NCBI GenBank assembly: GCA_002269645.1
Contig: NIVC01000754.1
Span: 62,001-126,000, forward strand
DNA from: Macrostomum lignano
Lineage: Eukaryota
Reading direction: 5' to 3'
DNA length: 64,000 bases
The notes beneath the pieces were generated by a model. That model was not told the DNA's origin, ran no database searches, and saw only the letters and a list, made by a program, of their open reading frames with translations. The position numbers were made by a program, and so were the translations under genes. This document shows, piece by piece, positions 10,076 through 64,000 of the stretch. Each line of letters opens with the position of its first letter. Position 1 is the first letter of the stretch.

Positions 10076-10140
10076 CCCAATGCATTACCCCCTCCTCCTA
10101 TCTCCGCCCTGTCGGCCGTGTTCTGCTAACCCCTACTACT

Positions 10141-13790: not shown

Positions 13791-13799
13791 TCGGTTGGT

Positions 13800-14354
13800 A
13801 GGCATTGATACAATCGGCTATTTACCGGTAGACGCCAGAAAAAAGCTGACAAGCAAGTTGGATATGACTGTCGAGTGCTGCGGTGTCTTCTGCTCTGTTG
13901 GAGGCTTCCCGTACTTTGAAGAGCAAGACAGGACAGAATTATATTGGACAAAATAAACTGCCTCAACCTGTATCTTGTATAAACATTAAAACGGCCTCTG
14001 CATTCAGAAAACTTATTCGCTTTAGAACGGTAGATTTATGCATTGACATAAATACGAATACTTTGTTCTGCTGTCATAATTAATTTTATACCAGAGCGGA
14101 GCTGCTTCAAGCAGTCGCAGATGCCCAGCCTCATGGTCTCGTCGACTCTGCCGACCTCCTGGAGCATCGCCGCCCAAACAGCTCTGGACTGCCTGATCCC
14201 GTGCGAGGCCTCAGCTGACTGCCAGGCTGTGATTTTCTCTGGCCAGCAGCGCCTGTGCCACCTGCTGAGGTTCGCCTACCCGCCTGCCAGTCTGAGCAAC
14301 ACCGATGGAGACTTTTTGTGCGCGGCTGAGTCTGCTCGAAGTAAGAAAGTTTAA
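13800..14354 (+). pseudogene. WSC-PAN copy A: truncated exon 1 (13800-13919) plus exon 2 (14095-14354)
   Basis: GIDTIG..VDARKKLTSK.DMTVE.C..FC..GGFPYF fragment lacking start and splice donor. PAN exon after TACCAG acceptor, with a 1-nt deletion near the stop. Confidence 0.85.
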
Positions 14355-15560
14355 AAAACTGCAAATACTTCGTAAAATATATTTTACTGCTCATCTAACG
14401 CCAAAAAAATAAATCCCTATACTTTTGGAGAATAAGCTAAGTAGTACACTTGTATCGGAGCATTTGATGACCACTAGACTCCAAATTGACAGCCGAGAAA
14501 GGGTCACACGTAGGGCAGAGGCAAGGCAAAAATTCACGGCAGAGGCGGGTCATGACTTGAGCAAGTCGCAACTGGCGTTGGCGCGCATGTAAGATGTCAT
14601 CTTTTTGAGTGGTGAAGCTGCTTTGCCCCGACAAATTACACCTGCTTGTCACTGCTAGTTCGAGGGCAAGTGCTAGTGCTGGGAACTGCCTTAGGCATAG
14701 ACTCGATCAAATCCTCTAACACCAAAATAACCTAGAGTAGAGCCCTTATTTGCTACCATCAGTCAGCAAAAATTTTTTTGAGTTCAATTTTTAGTGCACT
14801 TTGATGAGAGCTTTGCCAGCTGTTCAGCTTTATTGTTCGCTGAGTCTGGTGAAGCCCTGACAACTGATAGATGAGAGTGCAAGGATGCGATGCAAACAGC
14901 GCATTGTCTCCGGTTTAAAGCAGCTCTGAATAGAAATATACTGACTGTAAGAAGAGTTTAACATCTTTTTCGAATCTTATAGTCAAGTGAGCACAGAATT
15001 AAAGCCTTAACGCATCTTAAAAGCTTCGCTGAATGATTGACAGGAAGTAGTGAAGTAGTTTTATGGCCATAATTTTCTTTTTGCAAAGTAGCAAAAAACT
15101 CAAGCAAACTAACTTTCATAGATGCGGCGGTTTGTCCACTAATTTCCATTCGTTTTGGTGGAGTTCGGTTTAAGCCTGGATTTAAATAGACGATGAAAAT
15201 CACATCAGATTATCTACTGCCATGCTAGATAAAAGGCTAGTACAACTAATTCTGTCTCTTATCAGGGCTAGGAAAACTGTGAAAATTCAAATAAAGAGCA
15301 CTTCGAAGGCTATTCAAAATTGAAAGCATTTCTTTTGTCTTGCCTTCTTTCTAGCTTCTTTGATGAACGTCTGGATTGAGGGCCGCACCCAGTTATTATT
15401 CGCAAATTTGTCACAATTGATGATGAAATATAGATGCACTTTTTCATGAACTTTAAAACATGACTCTTCTCTGTTGTTTTCAAGTTTAAAATATATTTTC
15501 AGATTCTCTATAAAAATCTAGTTTAAATAACCGATGCCAATCGGTCAATCAGTCAGAAAA

Positions 15561-16501
15561 TCATCCACGCAGGAAAAAGTCTCCGTCGGTGCTGCTCAGA
15601 CTGGCAGGCGGGTAGGCGAACCTCAGCAGGTGGCACAGGCGCTGCTGGCCAGAGAAAATCACAGCCTGGCAGTCAGCTGAGGCCTCGCACGGGATCAGGC
15701 AGTCCAGAGCTGTTTGGGCGGCGAGGCTCCAGGAGGTCGGTAGAGCCGACGAGACCGTGAGGCTGGGCATCTGCGACTGCTTGAAGCAGCTCCGCTCTGA
15801 AGCAAACAAACAGGGCTAGTTTTAGTGCAGAAAGCATCTCACTTGAACAGTAACATCCCGAATCTTGAGTTCGGTTTCTTAAAGCTGCTCAAGTATAATC
15901 CAAGTATAGGCTTCACAACATCAATCATAAACTCGGACTCAGATAGACTGCAGGTTTCTTGCAATCGCCATTGAAGTCTTGTTGTCATGTACTCGCATCT
16001 CCAATTCATCACTTGACTGCTTGAGCGTCTACCAGAAATAGACAATCAATTCTGATTGAGTGCAATCTGAGTGCAAGAAAACTCACTCGGGTAGGTCAGA
16101 GCGAACACCGAATTTCGCCAAGAGCCTCCACAGATCTGGCTGGAGTTTCCGTTGCAAGGTCTATCGCAGTCGCTTTCCTTGGCAGTTCCGACCGAGCCGA
16201 AGTCCCAGCTGCAGAAACAGGCCCATGCGTTCTGCAACCCGAAGTACAGGAAGCCTCCAAGTGCGCAAAAGCTGCTGCAGAAGTCCTGAGTCATGCTGCC
16301 GCTTTTCACCCTTAGTTCCGAAACGGAGATTTCGCCAATCCTCTTAATTCCCGATAAGCCTCTCATGTCCCTGGCGCTGTTGTCCATGAAGCAGCCAATG
16401 TAGGAGACTTGACTGACTCGACCAGCGGTGACGCCAATGACAAGCAGGAGAGAGCAGCAGGCAGCTGCCAAGACTGCTGGGCGATTGCCAAGAGGAGACA
16501 T
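15561..16501 (-). CDS. WSC-PAN copy B, secreted 216-aa protein; exons 16087-16501 and 15561-15796
   Basis: Signal peptide; WSC motif YIGCF.D..R..MT..FC..FC....Y.GLQ...CFC..DC...C.GN..Q.CGG.W. GTGAGT donor and TTCAG acceptor, phase 1. PAN-like C-x3-C-x5-C..C exon. TATA near 16545. Confidence 0.9.
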
Positions 16502-17246: not shown

Positions 17247-18232
17247 TGTGGCGGCCCAATCAGCACGCAGCCAGCGATTGCGAGTACATCTGCACTGAAA
17301 CCCCCTGCCCGCCAGGCTGGGGGGTGGGTGTACTCGGACAGACAGTGAGTATGCTAAGTCGGGGGGTTGGCCTTCAATCGTGCCACCTTTTTGGCGCACC
17401 TCCCCATGTGATCGCGTGCTTATTTATACTTACCGCGTAAAGCAAATAAACTTTCACTTTTCTCGCTTGCAACTTACTTCGTTTTCGCAAGCCGCTAAAT
17501 TGGTGAGCCCGACATAGCTATTTCGTGCAATGGCTTCCAACACAGAGGCAGCTGTCTCTCTAAAACTGCGCAGCTCAACCCCGCGCATGGTTCATTCAAG
17601 CCGAAGCCCAGTTTTCTCTGCGCGGAATCACGCAAGATGCGACCAAGTACAACTACTTGGTGGCAGCGCTCGACCAGCAAACGGCTGAACGCCTCCTCGA
17701 CATTTTAGAGGCTCCCCCAGCAGAGGGCAAGTACGAGACGCTGAAGCAACGTCTCAAAGGCACCTTCGACTTGACGAGGCAGCAGAGGGCCAGTCGCCTG
17801 CTCAACATGACCGGCCTCGGTGATCGGCGGCCATCAGAACTCATGGATGAGATGCTCGCCCTGCTGGGAGACCACCCACCGTGCCTGCTCTTCGAAGAGT
17901 TGTTCCGCCAGCAGCTGCCGCCGGACGTGCGCATGGCCATGGCAACCGCCGACTTCGCGGAGCCTCTGCAAGCAGCGCAGCTCGCCGACAGGCTGTGGGC
18001 CAGCAGGCCGCAGTTCACCGCTGCCTCCGTCCAGCAGCCAGCGGTGGCGACCTCCCCACCGCCTGACCAGCCGGCGGTGGCTTCGGCCAGCAGGAGCAGC
18101 CGCCCGGCCCGGCAGCATCGGCCCCCACAGCGCGGTCAGGACAGCGGGCTGTGCTTTTATCATCGCCGGTTCGGCACGAAGGCCCATCGCTGCGAGGCAC
18201 CCTGCAACTTCCGGGGAAACGGGCAGGCCGTC
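17247..18232 (+). mobile_element. gag: Truncated Gypsy-type element: 5' LTR (17247-17499), PBS and gag
   Basis: TGTGGCGGC...GCCGCTA(A)A LTR, TGGTGAGCCC PBS. Frameshifted gag from ATG 17530: AVSLKL/PRAWFIQAEAQF..TKYNYLVAAL..LGDRRPSELMDEM..CFYHRRFG..A..C..PC. Confidence 0.85.
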
Positions 18233-18357
18233 TATTTTTTGGTGGAGTTCGGCTCGAACCTGGATACTATTGCAATAAAAAGCCGATGAAAGACATCTCA
18301 GATTACTCTGCTGCAATGCACTGTGTCAGGTTAGTAAAGCTAACTTTGTTTCTATAT

Positions 18358-19531: not shown

Positions 19532-19600
<69 letters not shown>

Positions 19601-19631: not shown

Positions 19632-19740
19632 CATTCCGTCGCCTCGATCGTCTGTTCCTTGGAACAAAATTGCTGGTTCGGACTGGCTGCGGCTCGAAGC
19701 GGCAGTGCTTCTGCAGCAGATACTACGGTCGTTTGAGAAT

Positions 19741-20221
19741 AACCAATGAAACAGCTTGCAATTATCCTTGCTCAGGAAACTCGAGTCAGGTGTGCGAAGG
19801 TTATTGGCGCAACTCGGTGTTCGCTCTGACCTAGCCCAGTGAGTGTTTAATGTCGTCTTGAGTTGCTAAAGGTTGAAAACCCTTTTAAATAATTTAATAC
19901 GAACTACTATATTGGTCTACGCATTGAAAAATCGAAAACTGTTTTGTTGTCACGTGTCCTGCTGTCGCCATACATTTTATTCCAGAGCGGAGCTGCTTCA
20001 AGCAGTTGCAGATGCCCAGCCTCAACGTCTCGTTGACCCTGTCGACCTCCTGGAGCCTCGCCGCCCAAACAGCTCTGGACTGCCTGATTCCGTGCGAGGC
20101 CTCAGCTGACTGTCAGGCTGTGATTTTCTCTGGCCAGCAGCGCCTGTGCCACCTGCTGAGGTTCGCCTACCCGCCTGCCAGTCTGAGCAGCACCGATGGA
20201 GACTTCTTCGTTCGCAGCTGA
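19741..20221 (+). pseudogene. WSC-PAN copy C: 3' remnant of exon 1 (with TAG) plus exon 2 (19986-20221)
   Basis: NETAC..C.GNSSQVCEGYWRNSVFALT*; GTGAGT donor; PAN exon intact; promoter and 5' exon deleted relative to copy I. Confidence 0.85.
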
Positions 20222-23200: not shown

Positions 23201-24048
23201 TTAGGAACTACATGTAGGATTCCTAAGCATATTAAGAACTGGAGCTGCTATTCAGCAGGTAGTTACGAGTAAAGAGCTAGCACGCATCTTCCCACTAGAG
23301 TTTCTACTCAATGGATCTCCCAAATGAAATGAATACCTGTTAAGAGAAGCGGAGGCCTGCCTTTCCAGAGTTTGCTAACGTTGGATGCTGGTACAAAAAA
23401 ACAATGCATGGACAGCTGTTCCGACTGGCAATAAAAAATGATAGCGGGAGTGTCACGCAAACACAGCTGCTGCTTATTCTCTTCAATAATGGCACTCTGA
23501 TACAGACAGGCAAGCTGGCATGCGCTAGAGAGGGAGATGGCTTCTGAAACTACGAGAGCTAAATTTGGTAAATCTCCAGGCGTATCGATAAGCTAAACGC
23601 ACACAATCCCACTCTGCGAATGTCTGTTCAGTCCAACGAATTACGAGCTACATAAGGTATACTGTATACATAAATTAGGAAGTCTTGCGGCTATTCGAAT
23701 TTGAATGCATAGCCTTTATGTAAAGTAGAATTTAAATTTAAACACACGATCGTCTCTACTCAAAGCAGCGGTAGATAAGGAAGTCATCAAAAAAGCATGA
23801 TTCACACCTGTCTAAAGTAAAGTAACTATTTAGACATTTACTGCATATTTAGGTTAAAAAATGTTAAAAGCACAGAAAAATTACTGAATTTGTTATAAAA
23901 TAAAATCTGGACTTTTTTCTTAAAATAAAATATTAAACAAATATATTGTAGCACAGAGCCCCATATAAGTTAAGCCCTGTTGCCACTAAGCTTTAAATAA
24001 ACTTTGAGAGTTTGCTAAATGATTCCAATAGGTTTACCGGTCAGAACT

Positions 24049-25066
24049 TCATCCACGAACGAAGTAGTCTCCATCGGTGCTGCTCAGACTGGCAGGCGGG
24101 TAGGCGAACCTCAACAGGTGGCACAGGCGCTGCTGGCCAGAGAAAATCACAGCCTGGCAGTCAGCTGAGGCCTCGCACGGGATCAGGCAGTCCAGAGCTG
24201 TTTGGGCGGCGATGCTCCAGGAGGTCGGCACAGTCGACGAGACGTTGAGGCTGGGCATCTGCAACTGCTTGAAGCAGCTCCGCTCTGAAGCGAATTAAAC
24301 AGGGCTAATTTTACTTAAAGCATCTACTCAAACAGTAACGTCCTGCATTTTAAGTTCGATTTCTTAAGGCTGCTCAAATATGATCCAAGTATAGACTCCA
24401 AGACAGTAAGCATAAATTCAGACTGGGTTAAACTGAAACTTTTAAGCAATTTTAGCCGAATATTTGTTTTTCGTCATTTTTTAGCGAAAGTCTAAAGGTC
24501 TGATGTAGGATATTTGTCATTTAGTTCTTTAAACGATAAATTGCATATAATATTTCAAGAAGTTTTAATTCATCACAGCGACTGCTTGAGCAGTTACGAA
24601 AAATTGAGCGCCAATTCTGAGTGAGTGCAATCTGAGTGCAAGAAAACTCACTCGGGTAGGTCAGAGCGAACACCGAATTTCGCCAAGGTCCTCCACACGT
24701 CTGGCTTGAGTTTCCGTTGCAAGGCATGTTGCAGTCGCTTTCCTTGGCTGGTCCAATCGAGCCGAAGTCCCAGCTGCAGAAACAGGCCCATGCGTTCTGC
24801 AACCCGAAGTACGGGAAGCCGCCAAGTGCACAGAAGCCGCTGCAGAAGTCCTGAGTCATGCTGCCGCTTATCACTCTTGGTTCCGAAACGGAGATTTCGC
24901 CGACGCTTTTGATTCCCGATAAGCCTCTCATGTCCCTGGCGCTGTTGTCCTTGAAGCAGCCAATGTAGGAGACTTGACTGACTCGAGCAGCGGTGACGCC
25001 AATGACGAGCAGGAGAGAGCAGCAGGCTGCTGCCAAGACTGCTGGGCGATGGACAAAAGGAGACAT
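24049..25066 (-). CDS. WSC-PAN copy E; exons 24652-25066 and 24049-24284
   Basis: Same 415+236 nt exon structure, intact frame, TATA near 25112. Confidence 0.9.
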
Positions 25067-26211: not shown

Positions 26212-26807
26212 TGTGACAAATAGGGCGGAACGTTTTGCTGTGTAGCGGTTAATTAGATTACTCTACGATTCAGCAGATCGGCAAGCCGCTTTCACCCTTA
26301 GCGTAAATTGGTACTTTGAATTGTAACGCCCTGCCAAGATGGGGATTCAGTTGATTGGTTGGTGGGCCGAGGTAGGCGGCGGGAGAGTTGAAGGCAAGGA
26401 GGCCGGACAGCTAAGGGGCCCGCGAGTTACAGCGAGGAGAAGCGAAGGGAGAGAGCGGCAGCTGACTGCAAGCGTATATTTATAAATACAAAAATTATAA
26501 TGAATACATACGAGGCTACAAAAAAACTAAGAATTCAGCAGTAGCATAAGTGCAATAATATTACGTATGAAAATGAATGAAAGAATACACGTAGTACGGT
26601 ATGCATGCGAGATAAGGCAATAAGTGCAATAATATTCCGTATGAAAATGAATGAAAGAATACACGTAGTACGGTATGCATGCGAGATAAGGCAATAAGTG
26701 CAATAATATTCCGTATGAAAATGAATGAAAGAATACACGTAGTACGGTATGCATGCGAGATAAGGAAATACGATACCTGTGCTTTCTACTAATTGAACAC
26801 TGTCACA
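26212..26807. mobile_element. Solo LTR (TGTGAC...GTCACA family), 4-bp TSD ATAT
   Basis: TG..CA inverted termini, ATAT on both flanks; homologous to 32329-32952 and 48547-49178. Confidence 0.85.
26546..26765 (+). repeat. 74-bp tandem triplication inside the solo LTR
   Basis: ATAAGTGCAATAATATT..GCGAGATAAGG at 26546, 26620 and 26694. Confidence 0.95.
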
Positions 26808-27390: not shown

Positions 27391-28139
27391 TTATCCACGC
27401 AGGAGGAAGTCTCCATCGGTGCTGCTCAGACTGGCAGGTGGGTAGGCGAACCTCAGTAGGTGGCACAGGCGCTGCTGGCCAGAGAAAATCACAGCCTGGC
27501 AGTCAGCTGAGGCCTCGCACGGGATCAGGCAGTCCAGAGCTGTTTGGGCGGCGATGCTCAAGGAGATCGGCAGGGTCAACGAGACCGTGAGGATGGGGAT
27601 ATGCGACTGCTTGGAGCAGCTCCGCTCTGGATTGAAATCGGTGATTACGATTTAGAACGCAGAACTACTAACTCTTAATACAGAGTGGTAGAGCGCAATC
27701 TACGCTCGTAAGTACGTGTGCAAACTTATTGGGGTAGGTCAGAGCAAATGCTGAATTTCGCCAAGGACTTTTGCAGATTTAGATTTGGCTGGAGCTTCCC
27801 TGGCAGTTTTTTGCAGTCGCTTTCATTGGCAGGTCCCAGCGAGACGTAGTCCCAGAATTATGGGTAGCAGGCCTCTCCGCTCTGCATACCCAGATAGGGA
27901 AAGCCGCCAAGAGCGCAGAATCCCATGCAGAACTCGTGGATCAGCTGCTTGTTTATCGTTCTCAAACCCTCCACTCTGATCTCACCGAGCGTATTGATTC
28001 CAAACAAGCCCTTCTGGTCTCTGATGGCATTGTCTCTAAAGCAGCCGACATAGGAGATTTGAGAAACTCTCCCAGTCGCCATACAGGCCAGAATTAGCGC
28101 AGCGAATACAGCAAGCTGAAGAGCAGTTGATGCTGCCAT
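27391..28139 (-). pseudogene. WSC-PAN copy D, divergent WSC; exon 1 about 27733-28139, exon 2 27391-27626
   Basis: Signal peptide plus SYVGCFRD..EFC.GFCALGGFPY. Premature TAA at 27858, a frameshift and a mutated donor; PAN exon intact. Confidence 0.85.
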
Positions 28140-34770: not shown

Positions 34771-34789
34771 GCCTGTAAAATGAGAAAAA

Positions 34790-40178: not shown

Positions 40179-40192
40179 ATGAATTTGGCCTT

Positions 40193-42516: not shown

Positions 42517-42530
42517 ATGAATTTGGCCTT

Positions 42531-46574: not shown

Positions 46575-46660
46575 TCCTATTCTGGGTCTCCACGACCTCA
46601 AGTTTCGCTATTTCAGACTCCTATTCTGGTTCTCCACGACCTCAAGTTTCGCTATTTCAG
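46575..46660 (+). repeat. 44-bp direct repeat, 2 copies
   Basis: TCCTATTCTGG.TCTCCACGACCTCAAGTTTCGCTATTTCAG at 46575 and 46619. Confidence 0.85.
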
Positions 46661-48546: not shown

Positions 48547-49178
48547 TGTGACGAATAAGGCGAATAAGACAGATTTGTGTAGCGGTTAATTTAGATAGTT
48601 AACGATTAGTTAGCAGATCGGCAAGCCGCTTCAACCCTTAGACTTTTGCTAGTGCTACTTAAAATTGCTGGATCACTTAATTAATTAATTGGTGTGCCAA
48701 GTTAGACGGCGGAAGAGTTGGTGTAAGGAGGCCAGACAGCGTCACAGCTAAGGGTTAGCGAGCCTAGGTCGAGAAGCGAAGCAAGGGGAAGGGCGAGAGC
48801 GGCTGCTGACTGTAGTGTAAGCATATATTTAAATGTAAACAGATAACAACAACACCCTTAATCCAAAACCCAGACAAACAACCCCCCACGCGGCGCGCAA
48901 TGTACATGTACAAATTAATCGATAAATATATCATGCAAGAATAACATCGCGTCAGTACATGTACATAGGTAGAACTACTTTACGATAAATAATAACTATA
49001 TGAATGAAATACAAATAATAGAATAAATACATACGAGGCTACAAAAACAAAGCAATTAACAGTAAAAATAGCGCGATAATAATACGTACGAATATTGTTA
49101 AAATAAATGAAAGAATACAGTATGCATATGAAAATAAAGAAATACGATACACGCGATTCTACGAATCACACTGTCACA
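48547..49178. mobile_element. Solo LTR (TGTGAC...GTCACA family), TSD CTAT
   Basis: TG..CA termini, CTAT on both flanks. Confidence 0.85.
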
Positions 49179-49420
49179 CTATCCTGCGGAAAAGTGTCTT
49201 AATTAGTGCAGAATCAAACCCAATCGAAAGTTTCTGGCCGCCCATTCGACTTCTCCATCAAGAGAAATTTTTTTGCAGGCTTGCACCATCAGAATGATCT
49301 TCCAAAAACGGGACAGAGTTCGCATAGCAGTTTCCTGTACGTTTGGGACACTTCTAACAGTTGCTATAACGCTCGTACGAATGAATTTTACCATGAGTAG
49401 TGAAAAATTTTAACGCAAAT

Positions 49421-51034
49421 AATATAGCATTTTGCAAGCTAGTAGAGACTACGAGCAAGCAGTTTAATCCGAGATAGCAAAAACATGCATTTTGAGCTCC
49501 ACTGCTAGTTGTCTATGGTAAAAAGTGTGTCAAACCAACAGCCAATTTAATCCTTGGAGCACCCATTTAAGCACTGAAATCCATAAACAGCGCTGTCTAT
49601 GCCGTTCCACTCTCAGTTTTTTCTGTCACGTTATTGGTGTGGTGACTGTAACCCTCAAAAGGGCCGTTTTGACGAGAATTACTTGTCACGTTAAGTCGTT
49701 GTAGTCCCAAATTAATTGTGAAGTCAAATTCTTGCGGAGCGGATTGTGTAGCGGAGCACTTGGCGTATAAAAGGCAGAGGACTGCCGTAAGCTGGTTTAT
49801 TGTCGTTATTAATATGGTTAATGTCAATACAAAGCTTATAGCGTTCTGGGGCACTGGCGGCTGCAACAACGGGTTGATGTAATTGAAATTATAAAGTCAA
49901 GTAGTTGACGAAGGATGCAGTGGCGACGCAACGTAGTAAGTGATGGCGGTGAGCACAGTGATGGCAGTGAGTAGCAAGTAGACAAGCAGACAAGTAGTGG
50001 CGAGATTGGGCGTTGGCCCGTGGCAGTACAAGGTGGAGCAAGAATGCGAAAAACAAGTCTGGCCCAGACGGAGTGGAGCCGTGGCGAGAGATAAGGAGAG
50101 AGAAGGAAAGGCGAAGCGAGCGACGAGGGAAAGAGGGAACGAGAGACGAGGGGAAGAGCGTGAAAACCCCCAGCCAGCCGCCAGGCGGGGTTAATAAAGT
50201 AGCGCAGGAAGGTTAGCATAATATATGCGGAGAGTTATCATTGGCTGGCGGGGGAAAAACAAGAAACAGAAATTATCGATCGCGCGAGACCCTACAGCCG
50301 TACGCAAAGATTACAAAGTACGCAGTGATTTAGCAAGTGATACAGATTCGCTGGGCGCTACTACAAGTAAACGTGAGAATACAAGACTGGAGAATGTTAA
50401 ATGAGAAATTGTAGAGGAATTGTAGTCCAACGGCCCTTTTGCGGGACCACCTTAAACTGGTAACGTCACATTTCAACATGTCAGACGAAAGTGACCAAGC
50501 CAGCACCCATTTTTGAAGACAGTGAAACATCTAGCAGTCGGAGCGCCACCTGTGCAATATGCTAAGATTAGCGACAAAAAGCATAGATTGATAATCGACG
50601 CTATCGACAGAGATGATAACAACAGAAGCATTGCCAACTTAGCACGCAGGCAAGAATTCGCACAGGCTGCATCGCTGTGGAGTTGATTACGAGTATGTAA
50701 CTTACTGAAGTCCAAACGTACATGCAAAAACTTTTCTGTCGTGTCTTTTTTATATGCAGGTTTCGTTAAGTGAACTTTTTTGCTGAACCTTGTTCTGCGT
50801 CGTAACTTTTCATATGGAGCTTCCTGGTTGGTTTCGTTGGAGGCATGCATGAATTAAATGGAAACCCGAGCATTATAGTGCTTAAATGAGTGCTCCAAGG
50901 ATTAAATTGCCTGCCGGTTTTTACACACTTTTTACCATAGACAACTAGCAGTGAGGCTCAAAATGCATGTGTTTTTGCTATCTCGGATTAAATTGCTTGC
51001 TCGTAGTCTCTACTAGCTTGGAAAATGCTATATT
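49421..51034. mobile_element. Non-autonomous TIR element (about 155-bp TIRs)
   Basis: 49421-~49577 is the reverse complement of ~50877-51034 (AATATAGCATTTT.CAAGCTAGTAGAGACTACGAGC...); no transposase recognised inside. Confidence 0.75.
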
Positions 51035-51288
51035 CGCGAAAGTACGAGCGTCTGTAGCTTTGCTTGCAAGTTGATGCGTATGAGTACAATGAGCCGAAGT
51101 ACAGAATGCAAATGCTTTCCATTTTCATTAATAGTGTATTTGCTCACATGCAAAAGTGCACGAATTTCTTTAAAGCCAATGACTATTTAACAATTAAACA
51201 ATACTCATATTTCATCACATATCCCAACAATTCAGCTTGAGCTAAGGCTTTTAATAAAGCATAGACGATGCATTGCATCTTTCTCATG

Positions 51289-51669
51289 GATGAATGAATA
51301 GAATGGATTGCTATTCTGGCTCTGGCTATTTTCGTTTTTGACTCTTTTGCATCCGGTTCCCCCCGTGCCTTTTCATTGGTTGATGATTGCCATAGACAAT
51401 TTTCGGCCTTCGCCCCTTTCTTTCGATGCACAAGCGCTTTCGCTCGTGTTTTGAAATAAAGGGGGAAGACCTACGAGCGCTCGATATTCTCTGCAAGTAA
51501 CTGACATTCTCAGTTCTTTGCGCTTGTGCTTCGAAAGAAAGGGGCGAAGGCCGAAAATTGTCTATGGCAATCATCAACCAATGAAAAGGCACGGGGGGGA
51601 ACCGGATGCAAAAGAGTCAAAAACGAAAATAGCCAGAGCCAGAATAGCAATCCATTCTATTCATTCATC
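51289..51669. mobile_element. Fold-back MITE with about 150-bp near-perfect TIRs, CATG flanks
   Basis: GATGAATGAATAGAATGG...CCATTCTATTCATTCATC, with CATG on both sides. Confidence 0.8.
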
Positions 51670-52714
51670 CATGGTCTTTTTACACAACCTTGTGATTTTT
51701 TACATGCAACCTAATGTGATTTTAGTAATCCTTGACTTTGTGCAGACGGCTCTATGTAGGAGAATCTTAACGAGGGTCTCATTCGTTAATGTGGTGAAGA
51801 TATTGATGTATGCTATACCAATGCACAACATTCCTCTAGTTGGAATGAGGATTGACAGATAAGAAGTCGTAATGGAAACAGCTGCAGCTGTGTTTGCGCT
51901 AAGTTGAACAGCTCCCTATAGCTCGTACTCCCGATGCAGTTTGAGAGCTGCATGTAGGATTGCTGAGCATATTGAGAACTGGAGATGCGATACAGTGGGT
52001 AGTCAAAATAATTAGCTAGCACACCTCCCACTACAGTTTCTACTCAATGGGTCTCTTAAGTAAATGGATACCTGTCAATAAAATCGGAGGCCTGTCTTTC
52101 CACAGTTTGCTGATACTGGATGCCAAACCCTGTTGGGACTAAAAAAATTGCATACACAGCTGTTCCCACTGGCAATCAAAATGATAGCGGGAGCCGCGCA
52201 AACACATCTGCAACTGATTCTCTTCAATACTGGCATCCTGATACAGACAGTCAAGCTGCACAAAGTACACGCACGAACAAAAGAGGGAGATGGTTTCTGA
52301 ACCTACGATAGAAAAATATTGTTGAATCTCCTTGCGTATCGATTGAGCTAGTTGCACACAATCCAACTCTGCGAATGTCGGTTCAATCCAGCAAATCAAG
52401 GTATTATTCTACACAAATTATTCCTTAACATGCAGCTGTAAGATCAGACATCTCTAATAGTGTGAAATTCTTAGGCTGTTCAAATTCAAATGCATCACTG
52501 AGAGCTAACAATAAAACGACTACAGTCTTTTTCATGTATTAATTAGTTAAAACATTACTTTTCTCTTTAAAACAAATTACTCAATAAATTGATGCTAGCA
52601 CAGATATCTCTATAAAGTGAAGCTCCATTGTTTTCAAGATAAAGATATGTTTTCAGATTCTCTGTAAAAATCCAGTTTTGATAAACGATGCCAATCGGTT
52701 AATAAGTCAGCACT

Positions 52715-53635
52715 TCATCCACGCACGAAGAAGTCTCCATCGGTGCTGCTCAGACTGGCAGGCGGGTAGGCGAACCTCAGCAGGTGGCACAGGCGCTGCT
52801 GGCCAGAGAAAATCACAGCCTGGCAGTCAGCTGAGGCCTCGCACGGGATCAGGCAGTCCAGAGCTGTTTGGGCGGCGATGCTCCAGGAGGTCGGCAGGGT
52901 CGACGAGACCGTGAGGCTGGGCATCTGCGACTGCTTGAAGCAGCTTCGCTCTGAAGCAAACAAAACGGGGCTACTTTAGTTGAAGCCTCTCGCTAAAACA
53001 GAAACGTTCCCATCAGTGAGCTCGTTTTTAAGCTGCTCGTTTATACTGCAAGTATAGGCTTCCAGACATCAGTCATAAACTCAAACTCAAACTGCATGTT
53101 TCTTTGCAAACATCATTGATGTCATTTTGTCCTGAACTCGCGTTTTAATTCATCACTTAACTGCTTAAGCGGCGACAAAAATTGAGCCACCAATTCTTAT
53201 TCAGTGTAAGATAAACTCACTCGGGTATTTCAGAGCGAACACCGAATTTCGAAAAAAGCTTCCGCAGATCTGGCTGGAGTTTCCGTTGCAAGTCATGTTG
53301 CAGTCGCTTTCCTTGGCTGGTCCGATCGAGCCGTAGTCCCAGCTGCAGAAACAGGCCTTTGAGTACTGCAACCCGAAGTACGGGAAGCCGCCAAGTGCGC
53401 AGAAGCTGCTGCAGAAGTCCCAACTCATGCTGCCGCTCGATACCCATGAGGTTGAAACGGAGATTTTGCCTACGCTTTCAATTCCCGATAAGCCTCTCAT
53501 GTCCCTGGCGCTGTTGTCCATGAAGCAGCCAATGTAGGAGACTTGAATGACTCGACCAGCGGTGACGTCAATGACGAGCAGGAGAGAGCAGCAGGCAGCT
53601 GCCAAGATTGCTGGGCGATAGCCAAGAGGAGACAT
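52715..53635 (-). CDS. WSC-PAN copy G; exons 53221-53635 and 52715-52950
   Basis: Intact frame, canonical splice sites, TATA near 53680. Confidence 0.9.
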
Positions 53636-53820
53636 CTTGGTCTCTTCTTCTAGAGCAGAGAACTCTTTCGTCACTGATTTATATACTACAAACTGATACG
53701 CTGCTTTTGGGCGTGAATCAAACCTTTTTCTTGAATTCCTTCATCTACTACTGCTCTGAGTAGTGCTGATCGCGTTTTCAAATAGAAATTGTCATTAGGT
53801 GTATTCGAAGTACGCGCCTA

Positions 53821-53950
53821 CTTACTTACTTACTACTGACGGGGGGCGCAGGCGCCGCGATTAGGCCGCGAGGCCCCTACAGCAACCCAAGGTAAAAGAG
53901 CACAAGGATTAACCTTGGGGGTGCAGCCGGTCCCCGCCAGGTCCCCTGCA
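53821..53950 (-). mobile_element. 130-bp LINE 3'-end stub (same family as 40193-42516) between 217-bp direct repeats
   Basis: Matches 40193-40310; flanked by repeats 53604-53820 and 53951-54167. Confidence 0.9.
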
Positions 53951-56457
53951 AAGATTGCTCGGCGATAGCCAAGAGGAGACATCTTGGTCTCTTCTTCTAG
54001 AGCAGAGAACTCTTTCGTCACTGATTTATATACTACAACCTGATACGCTGCTTTTGGGCGTGAATCAAACCCTTTTCTTAAATTCCTTCATCTACTACTG
54101 CTCTGAGTAGTGCTGATCGCGTGTCCAAATTGAAATTGTCATTGGGTGTATTCGAAGTACGCGCCTAACCAGAAATATTTCATTGATAAATATTTTTGCA
54201 CTTGTTATTAACTTGAAGCTAAACCTAAGCACAAGCATGAAGCATTATATAATAAGCATTACCCCAGCCCACAAATATCTGTCGACTGATAAATACAAAG
54301 ATCTCACGCTAGAAGTTGATCACACCCAAGCTCTTGTGACCAAAGTAAACATGGGAAAATTTCACTGGATGAGTTCTTCAGCTTCTTTTTAGAACGACAA
54401 GCCGGCGTCTCAGCACAATCTTTTCATGTGGCGGAGCAGATCTGACTGGAGAAGACCAAAGCAGCCAGATCCGGTATTATGTCAAATAAAGCGATTGACC
54501 GAGTAATGCTGGAGAGTGCACCTGTGACGACGAGAAAAAAAGACCGATTGGGGCATGACTGTTTTAACGGCGTGACACGAAGTCAAGAAAGCTGCCTGGG
54601 CTCGTAGTGAAGCTTCCGGTTTAATGGTGCTCAGGGACTACGAAGAAATGACGAGAGGCTCCCGGTGATCAGCAGACTGTTCGGGTCGCTATGGTCATTC
54701 AGGAGATGGCTGGTGAACCAAGAGGTAAGAAAATGAGAATTGAAACCGATGGAGCAAGCAACAAAGTTGTGTTTCCTTAACTAAAAAGTTTTAATTTGCC
54801 ATAAAATGTTAAAATTAACTTAACTTTGTGGTTTTGTTGCTGCTATTATAAAACGGTTGTCATCAAAACAAAATAAATTGTCATCTTTTAATTTTGCACC
54901 AAAAAATAATGGCCGGGATAATTAAATAATAAATCTATGGCCCAGTCGATTTAATTTTCGTCTTCTTTTTTTGGCTCGGCCATGCCGTGGATTAAATTTT
55001 AGACATCCATTCTTAGCCCAACAATTCAAATAAAAAACTTTGGTGCTATACAGTACGTCGGGTCGTAAGTTTCGTACTTGTAAAGTTACCACTCAATAAT
55101 ATGCCTCTTAAGATACGGAATTTCAAGAAAAACCGTGGCCTCCCATTCCATAGTGTACTTTGCATTGTACTTATGCAAAACTTTGCATAGCGTAATTCAG
55201 TATTGGGTTCCATTTTTGTGCTTCACATAAGCTCGTACTAAAATGAATGTCTTTATTTTGTTATGCTTCACTGAAGCGGACAAACTTACACAGTGGCAAT
55301 GCAATTTCATCTATTTCGCCGAATATTGTCTATTTTGACTTTAGATAGCCGGCTCACCTATATTGACTTTCAGGTGCCTTTTAACGTATTAAAAATAGCT
55401 ATGAAAATTATTAGAACTATAAAAAAGTATTAAAACTTTTCTCCAAAACAAGTGATTCAATAATCATCAATGATTCCATAATTACCACACAGATAGCCCC
55501 ATAAAGTGAAGCCACGTTGTTTTCAAGCTTAAAACATGTTTTCACATTCTCTAAAAAATCAAATTTTTTAAAAATAATGCCAATCCGTCTATTAGTCAGC
55601 ACTGCATCCGCTTACAAAAACCAGATTTAATGCCGATCTATGATGTGAGATGTCGTCACCTTTAAGTGTCTCAAGACTGATCTGGGACTTCACCGTGAAG
55701 AATTAAGCGCCGAATGAGCCCTCTATGTTGATGTAATCGTCCCCACTGGCACGCAACGGTCGGTTGAATTAAGAGAGAAAAATCTAGTTTAGTCAGCTTG
55801 ATTCTCGCAGGACTCTAGCATATGGAACGCATCGATAGAAATAGACCGATTTCCCATCCGAAAAATATATCAAGGTTATTAATTAAACTTATAGAGGAAG
55901 ACAGCGTCAGGTTAAGGATCCTGGATACAGGTACTTCATTGGTGTAGCAGCTGTCAGATCGGCCAGCCGCCCCTCCCTTGTGGCTGGCGAATATGGCGCG
56001 ACTCTTCCTTTGCCCTAAAAAAGGTCCTCAAAATCCTCACCGGACTAAGTTTTCTCAATATGACGCCCCTCCAGTGTATTATGGTACGCCACTTAATGAT
56101 TAAAATCCCCCAATTTAAATTTCAAAATAAGCTCGCCTGACCAAAGTGCCTTTTCGTATTTTGAACCACCCGCTAACGAAATGCAATGATAGGCCATCAT
56201 CAGACGACTTTCTTCTTAGAAAATACCCTAGAAAATGGAATAGCCTTCGAACACCGGCTGTCGCAATTTAGAGTTGGACACGCAGTCAGCACTACTCAAA
56301 GCAGCAGTAGATGAAGGAAGTCAATAAAAAGTTTGATTCGCGCCCAAAAAGCCTATACGTCTGTAGTATATAAAAGCAGTGACGAAAGATTTCTAGCTCT
56401 AAACTAAGAGACGAACAAACTAATAACAACAACAAACTAAGAGACGAAGAGACCAAA

Positions 56458-58095
56458 ATGTCTTCTTTTAGCAGTCGCCCGGCAGTCTTGGCAGCAGCCT
56501 GCTGCTCTCTCCTGCTGGTCATTGGCGTCACCGCTGCTCGAGTCATTCAAGTCTCCTACATTGGCTGCTTCATGGACAACAGCGCCAGGGACATGAGAGG
56601 CTTATCGGGAATCAAAAGCGTCGGCGAAATCTCCGTTTCGGATCCAAGAGTAATAAGCCGCAGCACGAGTCGGGAGTTCTGCAGCAGCTTCTGCGCACTT
56701 GGCGGCTTCCCGTACTTCGGGTTGCAGAACGCATGGGCCTGTTTCTGCAGCTGGGACTTCGGCTCACTTGGACCTGCCGAAGAAAGCGACTGCAACATGA
56801 CTTGCAACGGAAACTCAAGCCAGATGTGTGGAGGCCCTTGGCGAAATTCGGTGTTCGCTCTGACCTACCGAGTGAGTTTGCATGCACTCAGATTGCACTT
56901 AGTCAGAATTGGTGTCTCATTACTTGTAACCACTCAAGCAGTCAAGTGATGAATTGGAAACATGAGTTCATTAGAAAATACAACAATGATCAGTTACTGT
57001 TTAGGCCTTATTTGAATATTAAATTTGTAGTAAGACACTAGATTAACTGTTAGGTGTCTCCCTCTAGTCAGCAGCTTCCGTTGCCGCTGGGCACGGCTCC
57101 ACTTTTCTGTCTGCCTCCTCCCTGCTTGCCCCATCCGCTCTTTGTTCTGTTTTGCAGCCACTGAGCAGCCTGGCCTGTGTTCGTTTTCTTTTGCTGTTGC
57201 TTTCTTTCTTTTTCTGTTCTCTTCGTTCTGCGTGCAGCGGCTCGCCTTTTCCGTTCTGTTTTCTTGGAGTCCAAAGTGCAGTTAACACCTATACTATACT
57301 GCACAGATTGGTCCATGCTTACGACTAAACTCACTTTCCCGGCACCTTTGCCTCACTAGCAGCTCAGAAAATACCACAGTGGAAAAGACTTAGGTAAAAA
57401 TTGACGTCGCATAGACACCGCATCACGCAATATCTTGTTTGCTCTGGCGCAATGTAGTTATTTAAGTAAGGCTTTAAGTATGGACCCCTCAGCCGTGTTT
57501 CTGTCACAGCTTCAAATTTTCCAAGTCTCCAAACTCTCTCAGTTTCGTAATTTGCCTCAATTTCTGACAATAACATTGTTCTGAATCATTTCTCATCCTA
57601 AACTCACAAGACCATTAAGTCTGCTCTGAGACTAACAATGCAATCCTTAGTCGTCCCACTGAGCCCGCTGATGGATCTGCTGATTAGTTGTTGGAGTCGT
57701 AAATTTGCACGAAGTGCTGTGTCCGCTCGCCTTGCCTATTTTGTTCCAACGGGATCCTCGCTTCACCGAAGACTGAGACCTAATTGAGTAGCTTTAGAAA
57801 CCGACTTCAACGTTCGAGGTAGATTTTTAACTAAATTTAACTACGTTTGTTTGCTTCAGAGCGGAGCTGCTTCAAGCAGTCGCAGATGTCCAGTCTCAAC
57901 GTCTTGTCGACTCTGCCGACCTCCTGGAGCATCGCCGCCCAAACAGCTCTGGACTGCCTGATCCCGTGCGAGGCCTCAGCTGACTGCCAGGCTGTGATTT
58001 TCTCTGGCCAGCAGCGCCTGTGCCACCTGCTGAGGTTCGCCTACCCGCCTGCCAGTCTGAGCAGCACCGATGGAGACTACTTAGTTCGCGGCTGA
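56458..58095 (+). pseudogene. WSC-PAN copy H; exons 56458-56871 and 57860-58095; 1-nt deletion puts PAN out of frame
   Basis: Exon 1 is 414 nt (TACCGA instead of TACCCGA); intron enlarged by insertions. Confidence 0.8.
57048..57287. repeat. Short pyrimidine-rich LTR-like insertion in the intron of copy H
   Basis: TGTTA...TAACA ends; shares CTAGTCAGC and GTCCAAAGTGCA with 61639-62020; no TSD found. Confidence 0.4.
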
Positions 58096-59890: not shown

Positions 59891-60699
59891 ATGCTCCAGA
59901 AGCGCTATTGCTTGCTCATCTCCTGCTCTGCTCTCCTGCTGAGTTGCGCAGTCCGTGCCAGAGTGTTCCGAGTTTCCTACATTGGCTGCTTTGTTGACTT
60001 CTCAGACAGGGATCTGAATGGGCTGGAAGGCATCGATACAATCGGCTCTGTACCGGTAGACGCCAGAAAAAAGCTGACAAGCAGGTCAGACATGACTGTC
60101 GAGTTCTGCGGTGGCTTCTGCTCTCTGGGAGGATTTCCCTACTTTGGAGTGCAGCACAGAAGGCAGTGCTTCTGCGGCAGGTCCTACGGCCATTTCGGAA
60201 AGTCCAATGAAACCGATTGCAAATTTTCTTGCTTGGGAAACTCAAAGCAGGAGTGCGGAGGCCATTGGCGCAACTCGGTGTTCGCTCTGACCTACCCGAG
60301 TGAGTGTTTAATATCGATTTGGGCTGCTATGGGCTGACAACGCTTTAAAAAATTTAATACGAGCCATTATATTGAGCTACAAATCGACATAAATGTTTTG
60401 TTGTCAGGTGTCCTGCCGTCAAATTTCATTTTATTCCAGAGCGGAGCTGCTTCAAGCAGTCGCAGATGCCCAGCCTCAACGTCTCGTCGACTCTGCCGAC
60501 CTCCTGGAGCATCGCCGCCCAAACAGCTCTGGACTGCCTGATCCCGTGCGAGGCCTCAGCTGACTGCCAGGCTGTGATTTTCTCTGGCCAGCAGCGCCTG
60601 TGCCACCTGCTGAGGTTCGCCTACCCGCCTGCCAGTCTGAGCAGCACCGATGGAGACTTTTTGTTCGCGGCTGAGTCTGCTCGAAGCAAGACAGTTTGA
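59891..60699 (+). CDS. WSC-PAN copy I (divergent WSC subtype); exons 59891-60299 and 60440-60699
   Basis: Signal peptide, WSC, canonical splice sites, TATA near 59840. A 1-nt deletion extends the C-terminus (..FLFAAESARSKTV). Confidence 0.88.
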
Positions 60700-61638
60700 A
60701 AAACTGCAAATACTTCGTAAAATATATTGTACAGGTCATCTGACGCCAAAAAATAAATCCCTATACTTTTAAAAAATAAGCCAAGTAGTGCACTCGTATC
60801 GGAGCATTTGATGCCCACTATACTCCAAATTGACAGCCAAGAAAAGGTCGCACGTAGGGCAGAGGCAAGGCAAAAATTCACGGCAGAGGCGGGTCATGAC
60901 TTGAGCAAGTCGCAACTGGCGTTGGCGCGCATGCAAGATGTCATCTTTTTGAGTGGTGAAGCTGCTTTTCCCCGACAAATTACACCTGCTTGTTACTGGT
61001 AGTTCGAGGGCAAGTGCTAGTGCTGGGAACTGCCTTAGGCATAGACTCGATCAAATCCTCTAACACCAAAATAACCTAGAGTAGAGCCCTTATTTGCTAC
61101 CATCAGTCAGCAAAAATTTTTTTTGAGTTCAATTTTTAGTGCACTTTGATGAGAGCTATGCCAGCTGCTCAGCTTTATTGTTCGCTGAGTCTGGTGAAGC
61201 CCTGACAACTGATAGATGAGAGTGCAAGGATGCGATGCAAACAGCGCATTTTCTCCGGTTTGAAGCAGCTCTGACTAGAAATACACTGACTGTAAGAAGA
61301 GTTGAACATATTTTTCGAATCTTATAGTCAAGTGAGCACAGAATTAAATCCTTAACGCATCTTAAAAGCTTCGCTAAATGATTGACAGGAAGGAGTGAAG
61401 TAGTTTTATGGCAATAATTTTCTTTTTGCAAATTAGCAAAAACTCAAGCAAACAAACTTTCGTAGATGCGGCGGTTTGGCCAATATTTTCCAGTCATTTT
61501 GTTGGAGTTCGGAGCCTGGATTTAAATAGACGATGAAAATCTTATCAGATTATCTACTGCCATGCTAAATGTCAGGCTGGTACAACTAATTCTGTCTCTT
61601 ATCAGGGCTAGGAAAACTGTGAAAATTCAAATAGAAAG

Positions 61639-63075
61639 TGTAGTGAGTCGCTAGTTTAGTTAGGCGCCGCACTAGTCAGCTGGTTCCCTCGCCCTCGCCC
61701 CAGGCTTCTGTCTGCCGCTGGGCAGTTGCCTGTCCCCGCCTGTCCTCTGGCCTGTCCCTTGCCCGTTTGCCTGTCTGTCTGTTTGTCCTCGTTTGCCCCC
61801 CCTTTTGTCTTGTGCTCCCGTTTTGCAGTGCCCAGACAGCTTGGTCTGGCCTGCCTCTGTTTCGTTCTCTGTTTGGCATCTCCAAATTTGGAGTGCTGTC
61901 CTGTTCCGGTTCCAAGGTCACGAGTGCCTTCACTTGTGGGCCTTTTCCCCCTTGTCATGTGAGCCAGTCACATGACAGGGCCTTCTTCCTTCTTTAGTCC
62001 AAAGTGCAATGATTTCATCATTGTACGCTGGGCTCGTGTTTATGGGGAGATCACGTGTGCCCGGACCCATGCCTCCTCTGAGCAGAACCCGCTCGCTTGT
62101 TGCTAAAATTAGCATCAGAGTCAGAGGTGACTCTCAGCGGGGGGTCTTTCGTTAAGTGGTGCAATCGATTCTCTCTATAAATGCAGCCCCTCTCATGGCT
62201 TGGCTCAGTCAACCGTTTTCCGCGTTTCCTAGTTCGAAAGACCTTCAAGAATAAACCCGTATGTCGGATTTCCATCCTCCAAATATTTGTACTTTCTGTT
62301 TTGGAAATCAGCCTCTTACTTTTCAGTCAGCCGTCTCCCTTCGTCTACCATGCGCTTCCCCACAGACAACCTCAACCGTTAATTCATGATAGATAATTAT
62401 TCAGCTAACCTGTTCATTATTGTTAGCTCGTAGTATAAATACAACTTCAACCGCGGCTTAGGCCCTTCACTTCTTTTCTGCCCCGCTAATCACATATAGC
62501 TCGTGTTATAAGTTTATTGTGTCTAGTTTCGTTTGGGCCACAAACGATTGCATCGACGGAAATTGTGAACTAAGTAAATTTTTGCGCGCCTTTTAGGCAT
62601 CGAAACAGGAATACAACAGATTGCTTATCTGCGAATAGTCTATGGTCAAGCCGCCCCCATCTTTGGATATTCCCAACGGGTTATATTTGGATATACCCAT
62701 TTGCAGATAAGCAATCTGTATATTCCTGTATCAATGCATTTGCGAGGATATTTTTTATTCAATACAACAAAGCTGAATAAACAGATTGTATACATGCATG
62801 AAAACGGCCGTAACGTGGGTATAATGAAACGTGGACCAATTGTTCCGCAATAATCGAGGAGTAGAGCTAGAATCGACAATAACTACACTCACATCGGCCG
62901 AATTGCATGGTTTGTTCCGCATGGGATCCTCGGGGCAAGCCTCTTCTTCGCTTGGCAGTGGTGGCAGAGCATCATCGTTACCGCATTCAATGAATCGGAT
63001 CAACTCCATCAACTCTTCGTCATCCGCCTCGTCACGTCCACCCATACTCAAGTACACCTGTACACCTATACTTCA
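61639..63075. mobile_element. Composite LTR-like insertion absent from the paralogous site near 15296
   Basis: Paralog reads AAATAAAGAGCACTTCG without a break. Here about 1.4 kb starting TG and ending CA intervenes, including a TATA/AATAAA-bearing LTR-like piece at about 62023-62350. Confidence 0.6.
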
Positions 63076-63341
63076 AGAGCACTTCGACGGCTATTCAAAA
63101 TTGAAAGCATCTCTTTTGTCTTGCCTTCTTTCTAGCTTCTTTGATGAACGTCTGGATTGAGGGCCGCTCACAGTTATTATTCGCAAATTTTTCACAATTG
63201 ATAATGATATATTGACGCACTTTTTCATGAGCTTTAAAACATGACTTTTCTCTGTTGTTTTCAAGTTGAAAATATATTTTCAGATTCTCTTTAAAAATCT
63301 AGTCTTAATAAACGATGCCAATCGGTCAATCAGTCAGAAAA

Positions 63342-64000
63342 TCATCCACGCAGGAAAAAGTCTCCGTCGGTGCTGCTCAGACTGGCAGGCGGGTAGGCGA
63401 ACCTCAGCAGGTGGCACAGGCGCTGCTGGCCAGAGGAAATCACAGCCTGGCACTCAGCTGAGGCCTCGCACGGGATCAGGCAGTCCAGAGCTGTTTGGGC
63501 GGCGATGCTCCAGGAGGTCGGCAGAGTCGACGAGACGTTGAGGCTGGGCATCTGCGACTGCTTGAAGCAGCTCCGCTCTGAAGTAAACAAAAAGGGCTAG
63601 TTTTAGTGCAGGAAGCATCTCACTTGAACAGTAACGTCCCGAATTTTGAGTTCGGTTTCTTAAAGCTGCTCAAGTATAATCCAAGTTTAGGCTTCACAAC
63701 ATCAATCATAAACTCAGACTCAGATAGACTGCAAGTTTCTTGCAATCGCCATTGAAGTCTTGTTGTCATGTACTTGCGTCTCCAATTCATCAGTTCACTG
63801 TTTGAGCGTCTACCAGAAATAGACAATCAATTCTGAGTGAGTGCAATCTGAGTGCAAGAAAACTCACTCGGGTATTTCAGAGCGAACACCGAATTTAGCC
63901 AAAAGCCTCCACAGATTTGGCTGGAGTTTCCGTTGCAAGGCATGTTGCAGTCGCTTTCATTGGCTGGTCCGATCGAGCCGTAGTCCCAGCTGCAGAAACA
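63342..64000 (-). CDS. WSC-PAN copy J (5' end beyond window); exons 63868->64000 and 63342-63577
   Basis: CFCSWDYGSIGPANESDCNMPCNGNSSQICGGFWLNSVFALKYP, donor, PAN exon. Confidence 0.88.

Follow-up and report, generated by a model that had tools for sequence, protein, structure and literature searches.

We analysed a 64,000-nt window of the Macrostomum lignano genome (GCA_002269645.1, contig NIVC01000754.1, positions 62,001 to 126,000 of the forward strand) and found within it an array of ten two-exon loci for small, putatively secreted proteins in which a WSC domain is followed by a PAN/Apple domain. The reading we lean towards, at slightly better than even chances, is that these loci belong to a Macrostomum-specific birth-and-death family of lectin-like WSC–PAN proteins that is probably male-reproductive, in testis or germ line. 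Exon 1 falls into strongly diverged types, whereas exon 2 is near-identical among all copies, and this uniformity indicates gene conversion or recombination confined to exon 2, acting together with purifying selection.

A tblastn survey of the window with WSC-exon and PAN-exon peptides placed ten loci in the 13.8-64 kb interval and found no others in the window, and a search for a 59-nt core of exon 2 gave exactly ten occurrences, each with 0 to 2 mismatches (chance expectation 0), confirming the proposal of an earlier note on this DNA that ten loci share one WSC and PAN design. The loci alternate in orientation and come in two groups, A+, B-, C+, D-, E- and F+ and, beyond about 21 kb of transposons, G-, H+, I+ and J-. 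Their common design is a 415-nt exon encoding a signal peptide and the WSC domain, a phase-1 GT-AG intron, and a 236-nt PAN/Apple exon that carries the stop codon; the exon-2 acceptor and the 236-nt register are common to all ten. We read the gene model directly from locus F, where the ATG at 30699 opens a 415-nt exon 1, the donor is CCGA/GTGAGT and the acceptor TTCAG/AG around a phase-1 intron, exon 2 occupies 31187-31422 (236 nt including the TGA), AATAAA follows 69 nt past the stop, and the product has 216 amino acids. The motif TATATAAA lies at 30641-30648, 51-58 nt upstream of this ATG, and locus B has TATATAA at -48 relative to its own; promoters, like the splice sites, are conserved. 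Database gene models of relatives stop at the same '...RG', and we therefore place no exons beyond exon 2.

Six copies are intact (B, D, F, G, I and, as far as visible, J) and four are damaged (A, C, E and H). The earlier note had these counts right but had two of the letters reversed, since by position it is D that is intact and E that is damaged; its statement that the array continues past the window holds in so far as locus J, whose exon 1 starts at 63868, itself runs off the end at 64000. Exon 1 measures 415 nt and the splice sites are canonical in B, D, F and G. Locus A has its 5' end cut off at a LINE-like (long interspersed nuclear element) open reading frame (ORF; 12671-13798) and lacks the 3' third of the WSC exon, and its exon 2 has the same 1-nt deletion and alternative tail as locus I, in which the loss of one nucleotide close to the 3' end exchanges the last residues for the 16-residue tail FLFAAESARSKTV. 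In locus C the WSC exon is reduced to its final third and contains an in-frame TAG, locus E has two in-frame stops in the WSC exon and an ATAAGT donor, and locus H has lost one nucleotide, 4 nt ahead of the donor, so that exon 1 measures 414 nt and frame and phase are destroyed.

WSC domains bind glycans or other ligands outside the cell, with beta-glucan, xylan and chitin known as ligands of fungal WSC domains, and PAN/Apple domains serve protein or carbohydrate binding, dimerisation and ligand docking. The locus F product matches Pfam WSC (PF01822) with 59.8 bits against a cut-off of 27.8 (E = 3e-16) and, marginally, PAN_1 (PF00024) with 22.2 bits against a cut-off of 21.4 (E = 1.3e-4). Across the family, WSC is matched by 16 of 16 members and PAN_1 by 15 of 16 (E < 0.01, best 7.6e-6); diverged subfamilies also match both domains, and multi-repeat models reach 99-104 bits for PAN_1. 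Structure prediction and the wide profile search described below used database relatives rather than the spliced window proteins. The AlphaFold model, with 37 family sequences in its alignment, has a predicted local distance difference test score (pLDDT) of 87.8 and a predicted template modelling (TM) score of 0.82, and in the PAN half the helix (162-171) and hairpin expected of such a domain exceed pLDDT 90. In fold comparisons the WSC half matched the KREMEN1 WSC domain (root-mean-square deviation 2.6 Å over 105 columns) and Wsc1 (TM score 0.70-0.74), the same two proteins that gave its sequence matches in the PDB (E about 1e-8), and the PAN half gave weak matches to the apple domains of FXI and prekallikrein, to SML-2, to MIC4 and to the HGF N domain (E 0.02-1, probability 0.6-0.98). 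Pfam, the model and the fold matches thus back the idea of secreted two-domain WSC and PAN/Apple proteins that had been put forward for these loci.

The mature protein would have about 20-22 kDa, behind a signal-peptide-like N-terminus, and shows no transmembrane segment. The PAN half spans about 78 residues and has a C-x3-C-x5-C-x11-C core with 4-5 cysteines. Eight cysteines fall in the WSC domain, and the PAN domain adds five in the alpha and beta types defined below and four in the unlinked delta genes, so that the mature chain has 13 or 12. The additional cysteine is residue 142 of F (about 31192-31194), within 'KRSCFKQ' at the exon junction, and is common to the alpha and beta copies. Their odd cysteine count makes covalent dimerisation possible, and the unpaired 13th cysteine could form an intermolecular disulfide.

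The two exons have had very different histories. By exon 1 the loci fall into an alpha type (B, D, F, G, H and J), a beta type (A, C and I) and a gamma type (E), with nucleotide identities of 88-93% between alpha copies and 65-68% between alpha and beta; for exon 2 the identity is 90-98% in all 45 pairs. The intron ends are alignable within a type and at background level between types. The 3' flanks form groups of their own, type 1 in A, F, H and I and type 2 in B, D, E, G and J, with identities of 72-94% among A, F, H and I, 79% for B and J and 67% for E and G, the remaining pairs being at background level. F and H pair an alpha exon 1 with a type-1 flank, the flank that goes with an alpha exon 1 in B, D, G and J is of type 2, and A and I have a beta exon 1 with a type-1 flank. 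The genes are therefore mosaics of exon-1 and flank types with breakpoints in exon 2; between B and I the sole blastn match is a stretch of 226 nt inside exon 2.

Pairwise Nei-Gojobori estimates of synonymous (dS) and nonsynonymous (dN) divergence tell the same story. Among alpha copies exon 1 has a dS of 0.09-0.19 and a dN of 0.06-0.12, and between alpha and beta these rise to 1.05-1.35 and about 0.45, whereas exon 2 of the same alpha and beta copies differs by a dS of 0-0.10 and a dN of about 0-0.05. The delta genes, a tandem pair at another locus (L001) of GCA_002269645.1, have the same structure (394 + 236 nt, phase-1 intron) and provide an outside reference. Compared with them, exon 1 of the alpha and beta copies has a dS of 1.2-1.4 and a dN of about 0.4, and the first 35 codons of exon 2 are similarly diverged (dS 0.7-1.4, dN about 0.5), while the last 42 codons have a dN of 0-0.02 and a dS of 0.22-0.5, a low dS that is based on about 30 synonymous sites and to that extent weakens our case. 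Because synonymous sites in the 5' half of exon 2 do diverge against delta, the low alpha-beta dS must come from sequence exchange and not from constraint alone. The identities agree, with the 5' part of exon 2 at 94.4% among window copies and 59.5% to delta, and the 42-codon core at a mean of 98.0% among the ten window copies and 94.1% to delta. These 42 codons (CEASADCQAVIFSGQQRLCHLLRFAYPPASLSSTDGDYFLRG), which the model places at the end of the PAN helix and in the central hairpin and C-terminal strand, are, to judge from a dN/dS of about 0.03, under very strong purifying selection. Exon 2 of pseudogene E has six unique changes in the 5' half and two in the core, too few to separate conversion from constraint.

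An alternative is that the near-identity of exon 2 is kept by selection on the nucleotides themselves rather than by conversion, for instance if the exon contained an RNA element, gave rise to an antisense product or were targeted by small RNAs. It draws on the way the block of identity ends almost exactly at the exon-2 borders, on the last 129 nt being still about 94% identical in the unlinked delta genes, and on the antisense strand of every PAN exon being open for 76-91 codons (e.g., 31223-31465 on the minus strand), the last of which is probably a by-product of codon composition. Islands of homology between non-homologous flanks, however, are the typical product of conversion between diverged paralogues, and a dS of about 1 between the alpha or beta copies and delta in the 5' half of exon 2, against 0-0.1 between alpha and beta, requires shared ancestry rather than constraint. 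An Rfam scan of the window gave no match, and the RNA of the exon-2 core is no more stably folded than shuffled sequence (z = +0.66), on which ground RNA structure was rejected as the cause of the conservation. We consider selection on nucleotides very unlikely, and conversion with purifying selection the better account. The contrast between variable and constant exons that had been noted here is therefore real in that exon 2 is far more uniform, but conversion plus purifying selection explains it better than a designed organisation.

Exchange may not stop at exon 2, as the synonymous difference per site (pS) among alpha copies is patchy, approaching 0 in codons 16-40, 81-95 and 156-200 as against 0.2-0.35 in the other codons, which suggests conversion tracts inside exon 1 too. 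The diversifying selection that had been envisaged for the WSC domain found no support when dN/dS was calculated per exon: pairwise values for alpha exon 1 were 0.3-0.77, below 1, and neither robust positive selection nor a solid hypervariable patch was found in WSC. Windows in which nonsynonymous differences per site exceed synonymous ones (pN/pS > 1) are unreliable because they hold few changes and pS there is near zero, probably through conversion.

The array has grown and decayed by several routes. The segment 14064-16219 with loci A and B is about 94.5% identical to that with I and J (60409-61633 and 63075-64000), and this convergent gene pair was therefore duplicated as a unit; E/F and G/H are divergent pairs with matching flank types. 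About 350 bp upstream of G lies an orphan stub of its promoter and gene start, 95.9% identical to 53599-53820 and including TATATAAA. Four dead copies in ten, together with this promoter stub, fit birth-and-death evolution. An assembly artefact or haplotype duplication was rejected as the source of the copies, which diverge by 2-35% and are distinct in their introns, flanks and transposon insertions.

Several further features of the loci and their surroundings were seen (Table 1). AATAAA stands at +53 to +69 in the type-1 3' flanks of A, F and I, and neither AATAAA nor ATTAAA was found within 400 nt past the stop in B, D, G or J (15161-15560, 23649-24048, 52315-52714 and 62942-63341). A LINE-type element ends exactly at the start of truncated locus A, with a 27-bp repeat of 2.5 units at 13714-13780; (TC)31 at 19535-19597 lies directly upstream of truncated locus C; and a 74-bp repeat in three tandem copies, 98% identical, occupies 26546-26770 between D and E. 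The GC content of the window ranges from 38 to 63%, and the long terminal repeat (LTR) element in the spacer forms its GC-rich block (57-63%). Inside this element an uninterrupted 939-amino-acid ORF for reverse transcriptase (RT) and RNase H runs at 40281-43097 on the minus strand, and its gag-protease ORF (42752-44524, minus) and integrase ORFs (44529-45815, plus) lie on opposite strands. The window opens, from 1 to 9129, with a run of long ORFs mostly on the minus strand, only two of which have Pfam matches, one to an rve integrase with a chromodomain (6954-8021) and one PC4-like (8383-9129); this region looks like part of a large DNA-transposon-like element.

Table 1. Loci of the WSC–PAN array and other features, in coordinates of the 64,000-nt window
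Feature	Position	Strand	Details
LINE RT fragment	10101-11084	-	one of the LINE-type fragments of 10.1-13.8 kb
LINE endonuclease-like ORF	11749-12288	+	followed by long ORFs up to 13798
Locus A, pseudogene, beta-type	13789-14354	+	WSC fragment 13789-13944; exon 2 14095-14354
Locus B, intact, alpha	15561-16501	-	exon 1 16087-16501; intron 290 nt; exon 2 15561-15796
DUF7041 ORF	17564-18286	+	domain match
Locus C, pseudogene, beta-like	19685-20221	+	WSC remnant 19685-19838; exon 2 19986-20221
Locus D, intact, alpha	24049-25066	-	exon 1 24652-25066; intron 367 nt; exon 2 24049-24284
Locus E, pseudogene, gamma	27391-28139	-	WSC exon 27730-28139; exon 2 27391-27626, ends TAA
Locus F, intact, alpha	30699-31422	+	exon 1 30699-31113; intron 73 nt; AATAAA about 31491
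Transposon-filled spacer between F and G	32500-52300		DIRS-like and LTR elements
DIRS-like ORFs	34057-36156	-	element about 34.0-36.2 kb; weak tyrosine-recombinase N-terminal (Phage_int_SAM_4) match and RT match
LTR element	39633-46391		196-bp LTRs, 98.5% identical
Locus G, intact, most divergent alpha copy	52715-53635	-	exon 1 53221-53635; intron 270 nt; exon 2 52715-52950
Orphan duplicate of G promoter, 5' untranslated region and first ~33 nt of exon 1	53946-54167	-	95.9% identical to 53599-53820
Locus H, pseudogene, alpha	56458-58095	+	exon 1 56458-56871; intron 988 nt; exon 2 57860-58095
Locus I, intact, beta	59891-60699	+	exon 1 59891-60299 (409 nt); intron 140 nt; exon 2 60440-60699
Locus J, alpha, intact as far as visible	63342-64000	-	exon 2 63342-63577; intron 290 nt

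Every close protein match to the window genes came from M. lignano, among them UniProt A0A1I8G9H2 (P0003), which is the locus D product residue for residue, A0A1I8HUC0 (P0015), which matches locus I, and A0A1I8GA57 (P0002), which is close to locus J. When 1.84 billion cluster representatives were searched with a profile, 7674 matched WSC; all ten two-domain matches whose source was looked up belong to M. lignano (177-487 amino acids, mostly 205-220), and the matches outside Macrostomum (Mytilus, fungi, algae and metagenomes) cover WSC only. The M. lignano members brought together by a second search number about 45 and span many diverged subfamilies. Besides the delta pair, a further locus (L002; NIVC01000622.1, 2131-19552) holds five WSC(+PAN) loci that differ in subfamily and orientation, one of them a stop-bearing fragment, in which the invariant C-terminal core is kept only in a delta member and the neighbouring subfamilies have a diverged PAN. 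The window is therefore one of several clusters, and the compact family of signal peptide, WSC and PAN appears restricted to the genus Macrostomum. Database entries name its members 'WSC domain-containing protein' or 'Apple domain-containing protein', and it otherwise figures as an unnamed orthogroup; a literature search found no paper describing the family, in agreement with the earlier note, which had known of none.

The case for a role in male reproduction comes from the annotation of relatives. Brand et al. 2020 (PMC7336406) list Mlig011376.g1, Mlig012529.g1 and Mlig003596.g1, which correspond to the NCBI-named relatives P0008, P0011 and P0013, in orthogroup OG0000005, whose 92 genes divide, by our count of the listed gene IDs, into 37 from M. 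lignano, 13 from M. hystrix, 42 from M. spirale and none from M. pusillum, and whose mean protein divergence is 0.92. The positional classes of its members ('Non-Specific', 'Other' and 'Testes') yield the label 'Testis', and the neoblast data set adds the label 'germline_FACS'; the annotation of the orthogroup contains no 'Tail' member, no social-sensitivity signal and no in situ hybridization entry (PMC7336406). On these testis and germline labels we rank a male-germline or testis role above a prostate role and above immunity. Several points weigh against it. One testis-region member is enough for the orthogroup label, other members being 'Non-Specific/Other', and a positional label denotes a body region, not an organ, according to the authors themselves (PMC7336406). 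Membership of the window genes in OG0000005 follows from about 60% identity to its named members, four of the ten copies are dead, and G is without the nearly invariant Trp128. Finally, the 76 prostate-limited seminal-fluid candidates of M. lignano include more WSC proteins than any other annotated class (Weber et al. 2018, PMC5977470), a predominance that leaves some room for a prostate role.

The last of these points leads to the alternative that the window genes are themselves prostate or seminal-fluid proteins, like the many WSC-domain transcripts of this species that in situ hybridization has located in the prostate. According to Table S1 of Weber et al. 2018 (PMC5977470), at least 20 prostate-limited transcripts match WSC or 'fungistatic metabolite' proteins and two match an oyster 'plasminogen'. 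RNA815_80.4, with two WSC domains, is prostate-specific, and the WSC-domain candidates Mlig-pro4, 5, 11, 23, 28, 38, 46, 49 and 63 are known from Weber 2018, an RNA interference (RNAi) screen (PMC6953679) and a preprint (bioRxiv 10.1101/734301). Two of the prostate-limited seminal-fluid candidates of M. lignano have RNAi phenotypes. The likeness extends beyond the domain, as these are small secreted WSC proteins of the same species, encoded in multi-copy clusters (e.g., Mlig024181.g1-g10), in a fast-evolving class related to reproduction. Their primers and gene IDs, however, map neither to the window nor to the named relatives: none of the 18 published primer pairs (36 primers, for 18 of the 76 candidates) matches the window at up to three mismatches, which argues against identity with the candidates so covered, and none of the Mlig gene IDs of the relatives is in the seminal-fluid candidate list. 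Judging by the lengths of amplicons and alignments, many of the prostate-limited candidates also appear to contain two or three WSC domains, and the candidates are tail- and prostate-expressed and socially sensitive, whereas the OG0000005 relatives carry testis and germline labels, with neither 'Tail' nor social-sensitivity nor in situ annotation. We therefore regard a prostate origin as unlikely.

The earlier note had proposed a diversified set of secreted innate-immune lectins comparable to FREP or VCBP, or else a mucus or adhesive family, with variable WSC heads and a constant PAN effector. Such a role would suit the glycan ligands of fungal WSC domains, the presence of the galactose-binding PAN lectins SML-2 and MIC4 among the fold matches, the occurrence of three divergent WSC subtypes beside a uniform exon 2, and the mostly unspecific positional classes of OG0000005. 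The analogy with FREP and VCBP does not carry over, however, since in those proteins an immunoglobulin-superfamily V domain is joined to a fibrinogen-related or chitin-binding domain, whereas Pfam finds WSC and PAN_1 only, and no such module, in the locus F product and the family members. The pairwise dN/dS of WSC given above and its lack of a robust hypervariable patch also speak against a diversified repertoire, the constancy of exon 2 is accounted for by conversion, the only specific expression labels of the relatives are testis and germline, and the literature search found no paper tying the family to immunity or adhesion. Taken together, this makes an immune or adhesive role distinctly unlikely, and a male-reproductive role in testis or germ line remains the reading we favour.

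We propose that these two-exon genes, driven from TATA elements, encode predicted secreted WSC and PAN proteins, probably made in testis or germ line, that could act as extracellular binders of glycans or proteins in male reproduction rather than in immunity. The WSC head would differ between paralogues and the PAN domain would provide a conserved interaction surface, with the unpaired 13th cysteine of the alpha and beta types possibly linking chains into covalent dimers. The cluster changes by segmental and inverted duplication of gene pairs, by transposon insertion and by pseudogenisation, while conversion or recombination confined to exon 2 keeps that exon near-identical among otherwise very different copies. 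A bolder version, to which we give only a small chance, is a germline-encoded recognition system of the male germ line with a variable head and a constant handle, in which the WSC heads would track changing glycans of the partner's tract or eggs under sexual conflict, and recurrent conversion of exon 2 would keep one PAN handle docking to the same component of sperm or partner.

Research on sexual selection in hermaphrodites uses M. lignano as a model, and what is new here is a family separate from the seminal-fluid WSC candidates of this species; its architecture is signal peptide–WSC–PAN, and it comprises at least about 37 gene models and several mixed clusters. If its male-reproductive role is true, the family would be a candidate for glycan recognition between sperm and partner. 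The array is also a clean example of exon-limited concerted evolution, in which the dS of adjacent exons differs more than tenfold. In practice, the near-identity of exon 2 interferes with mapping reads to these genes and with assigning their orthologues, and the same property means that one RNAi or probe target in this exon covers the entire family, with exon 1 available for subtype-specific probes; if the PAN domain does act as a constant handle to variable heads, an RNAi trigger in exon 2 would silence the whole family at once.

Among known proteins, KREMEN1 (PDB 5FWS) and yeast Wsc1 (PDB 7PZ2) resemble the family in the sequence, fold and eight-cysteine pattern of the WSC domain, but they are membrane receptors, the one with kringle and CUB domains and the other with a Ser/Thr-rich stalk and a transmembrane helix, whereas the window proteins are short and predicted to be soluble. 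PAN/Apple lectins and adaptors (SML-2 of Sarcocystis, MIC4 of Toxoplasma, FXI, prekallikrein and the HGF N domain) share with them the PAN_1 match, the cysteine core and a weak fold likeness, and the dimerisation and ligand docking of apple domains would by analogy be the role of the conserved PAN module; unlike six-cysteine apple domains, however, the window PAN is short, has four or five cysteines and scores barely over the Pfam cut-off. As a whole, the family resembles systems of kinds already known: on the one hand the secreted, lectin-type reproductive families that are specific to a lineage, on the other the paralogue arrays that undergo exon-limited concerted evolution. With concerted and birth-and-death families it has in common tandem and inverted duplicates, pseudogenes, mosaic genes and flanks, and the discordant dS of adjacent exons. 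In the sperm lectin bindin of oysters, a functional analogue, a single gene with F-lectin domains generates the diversity through its repeat number, through recombination and through splicing. Both systems pair a diversifying lectin-type domain with a male-reproductive setting, which is probable in the present case, but the M. lignano family spreads its diversity over many germline genes with WSC domains, for which positive selection is not claimed.

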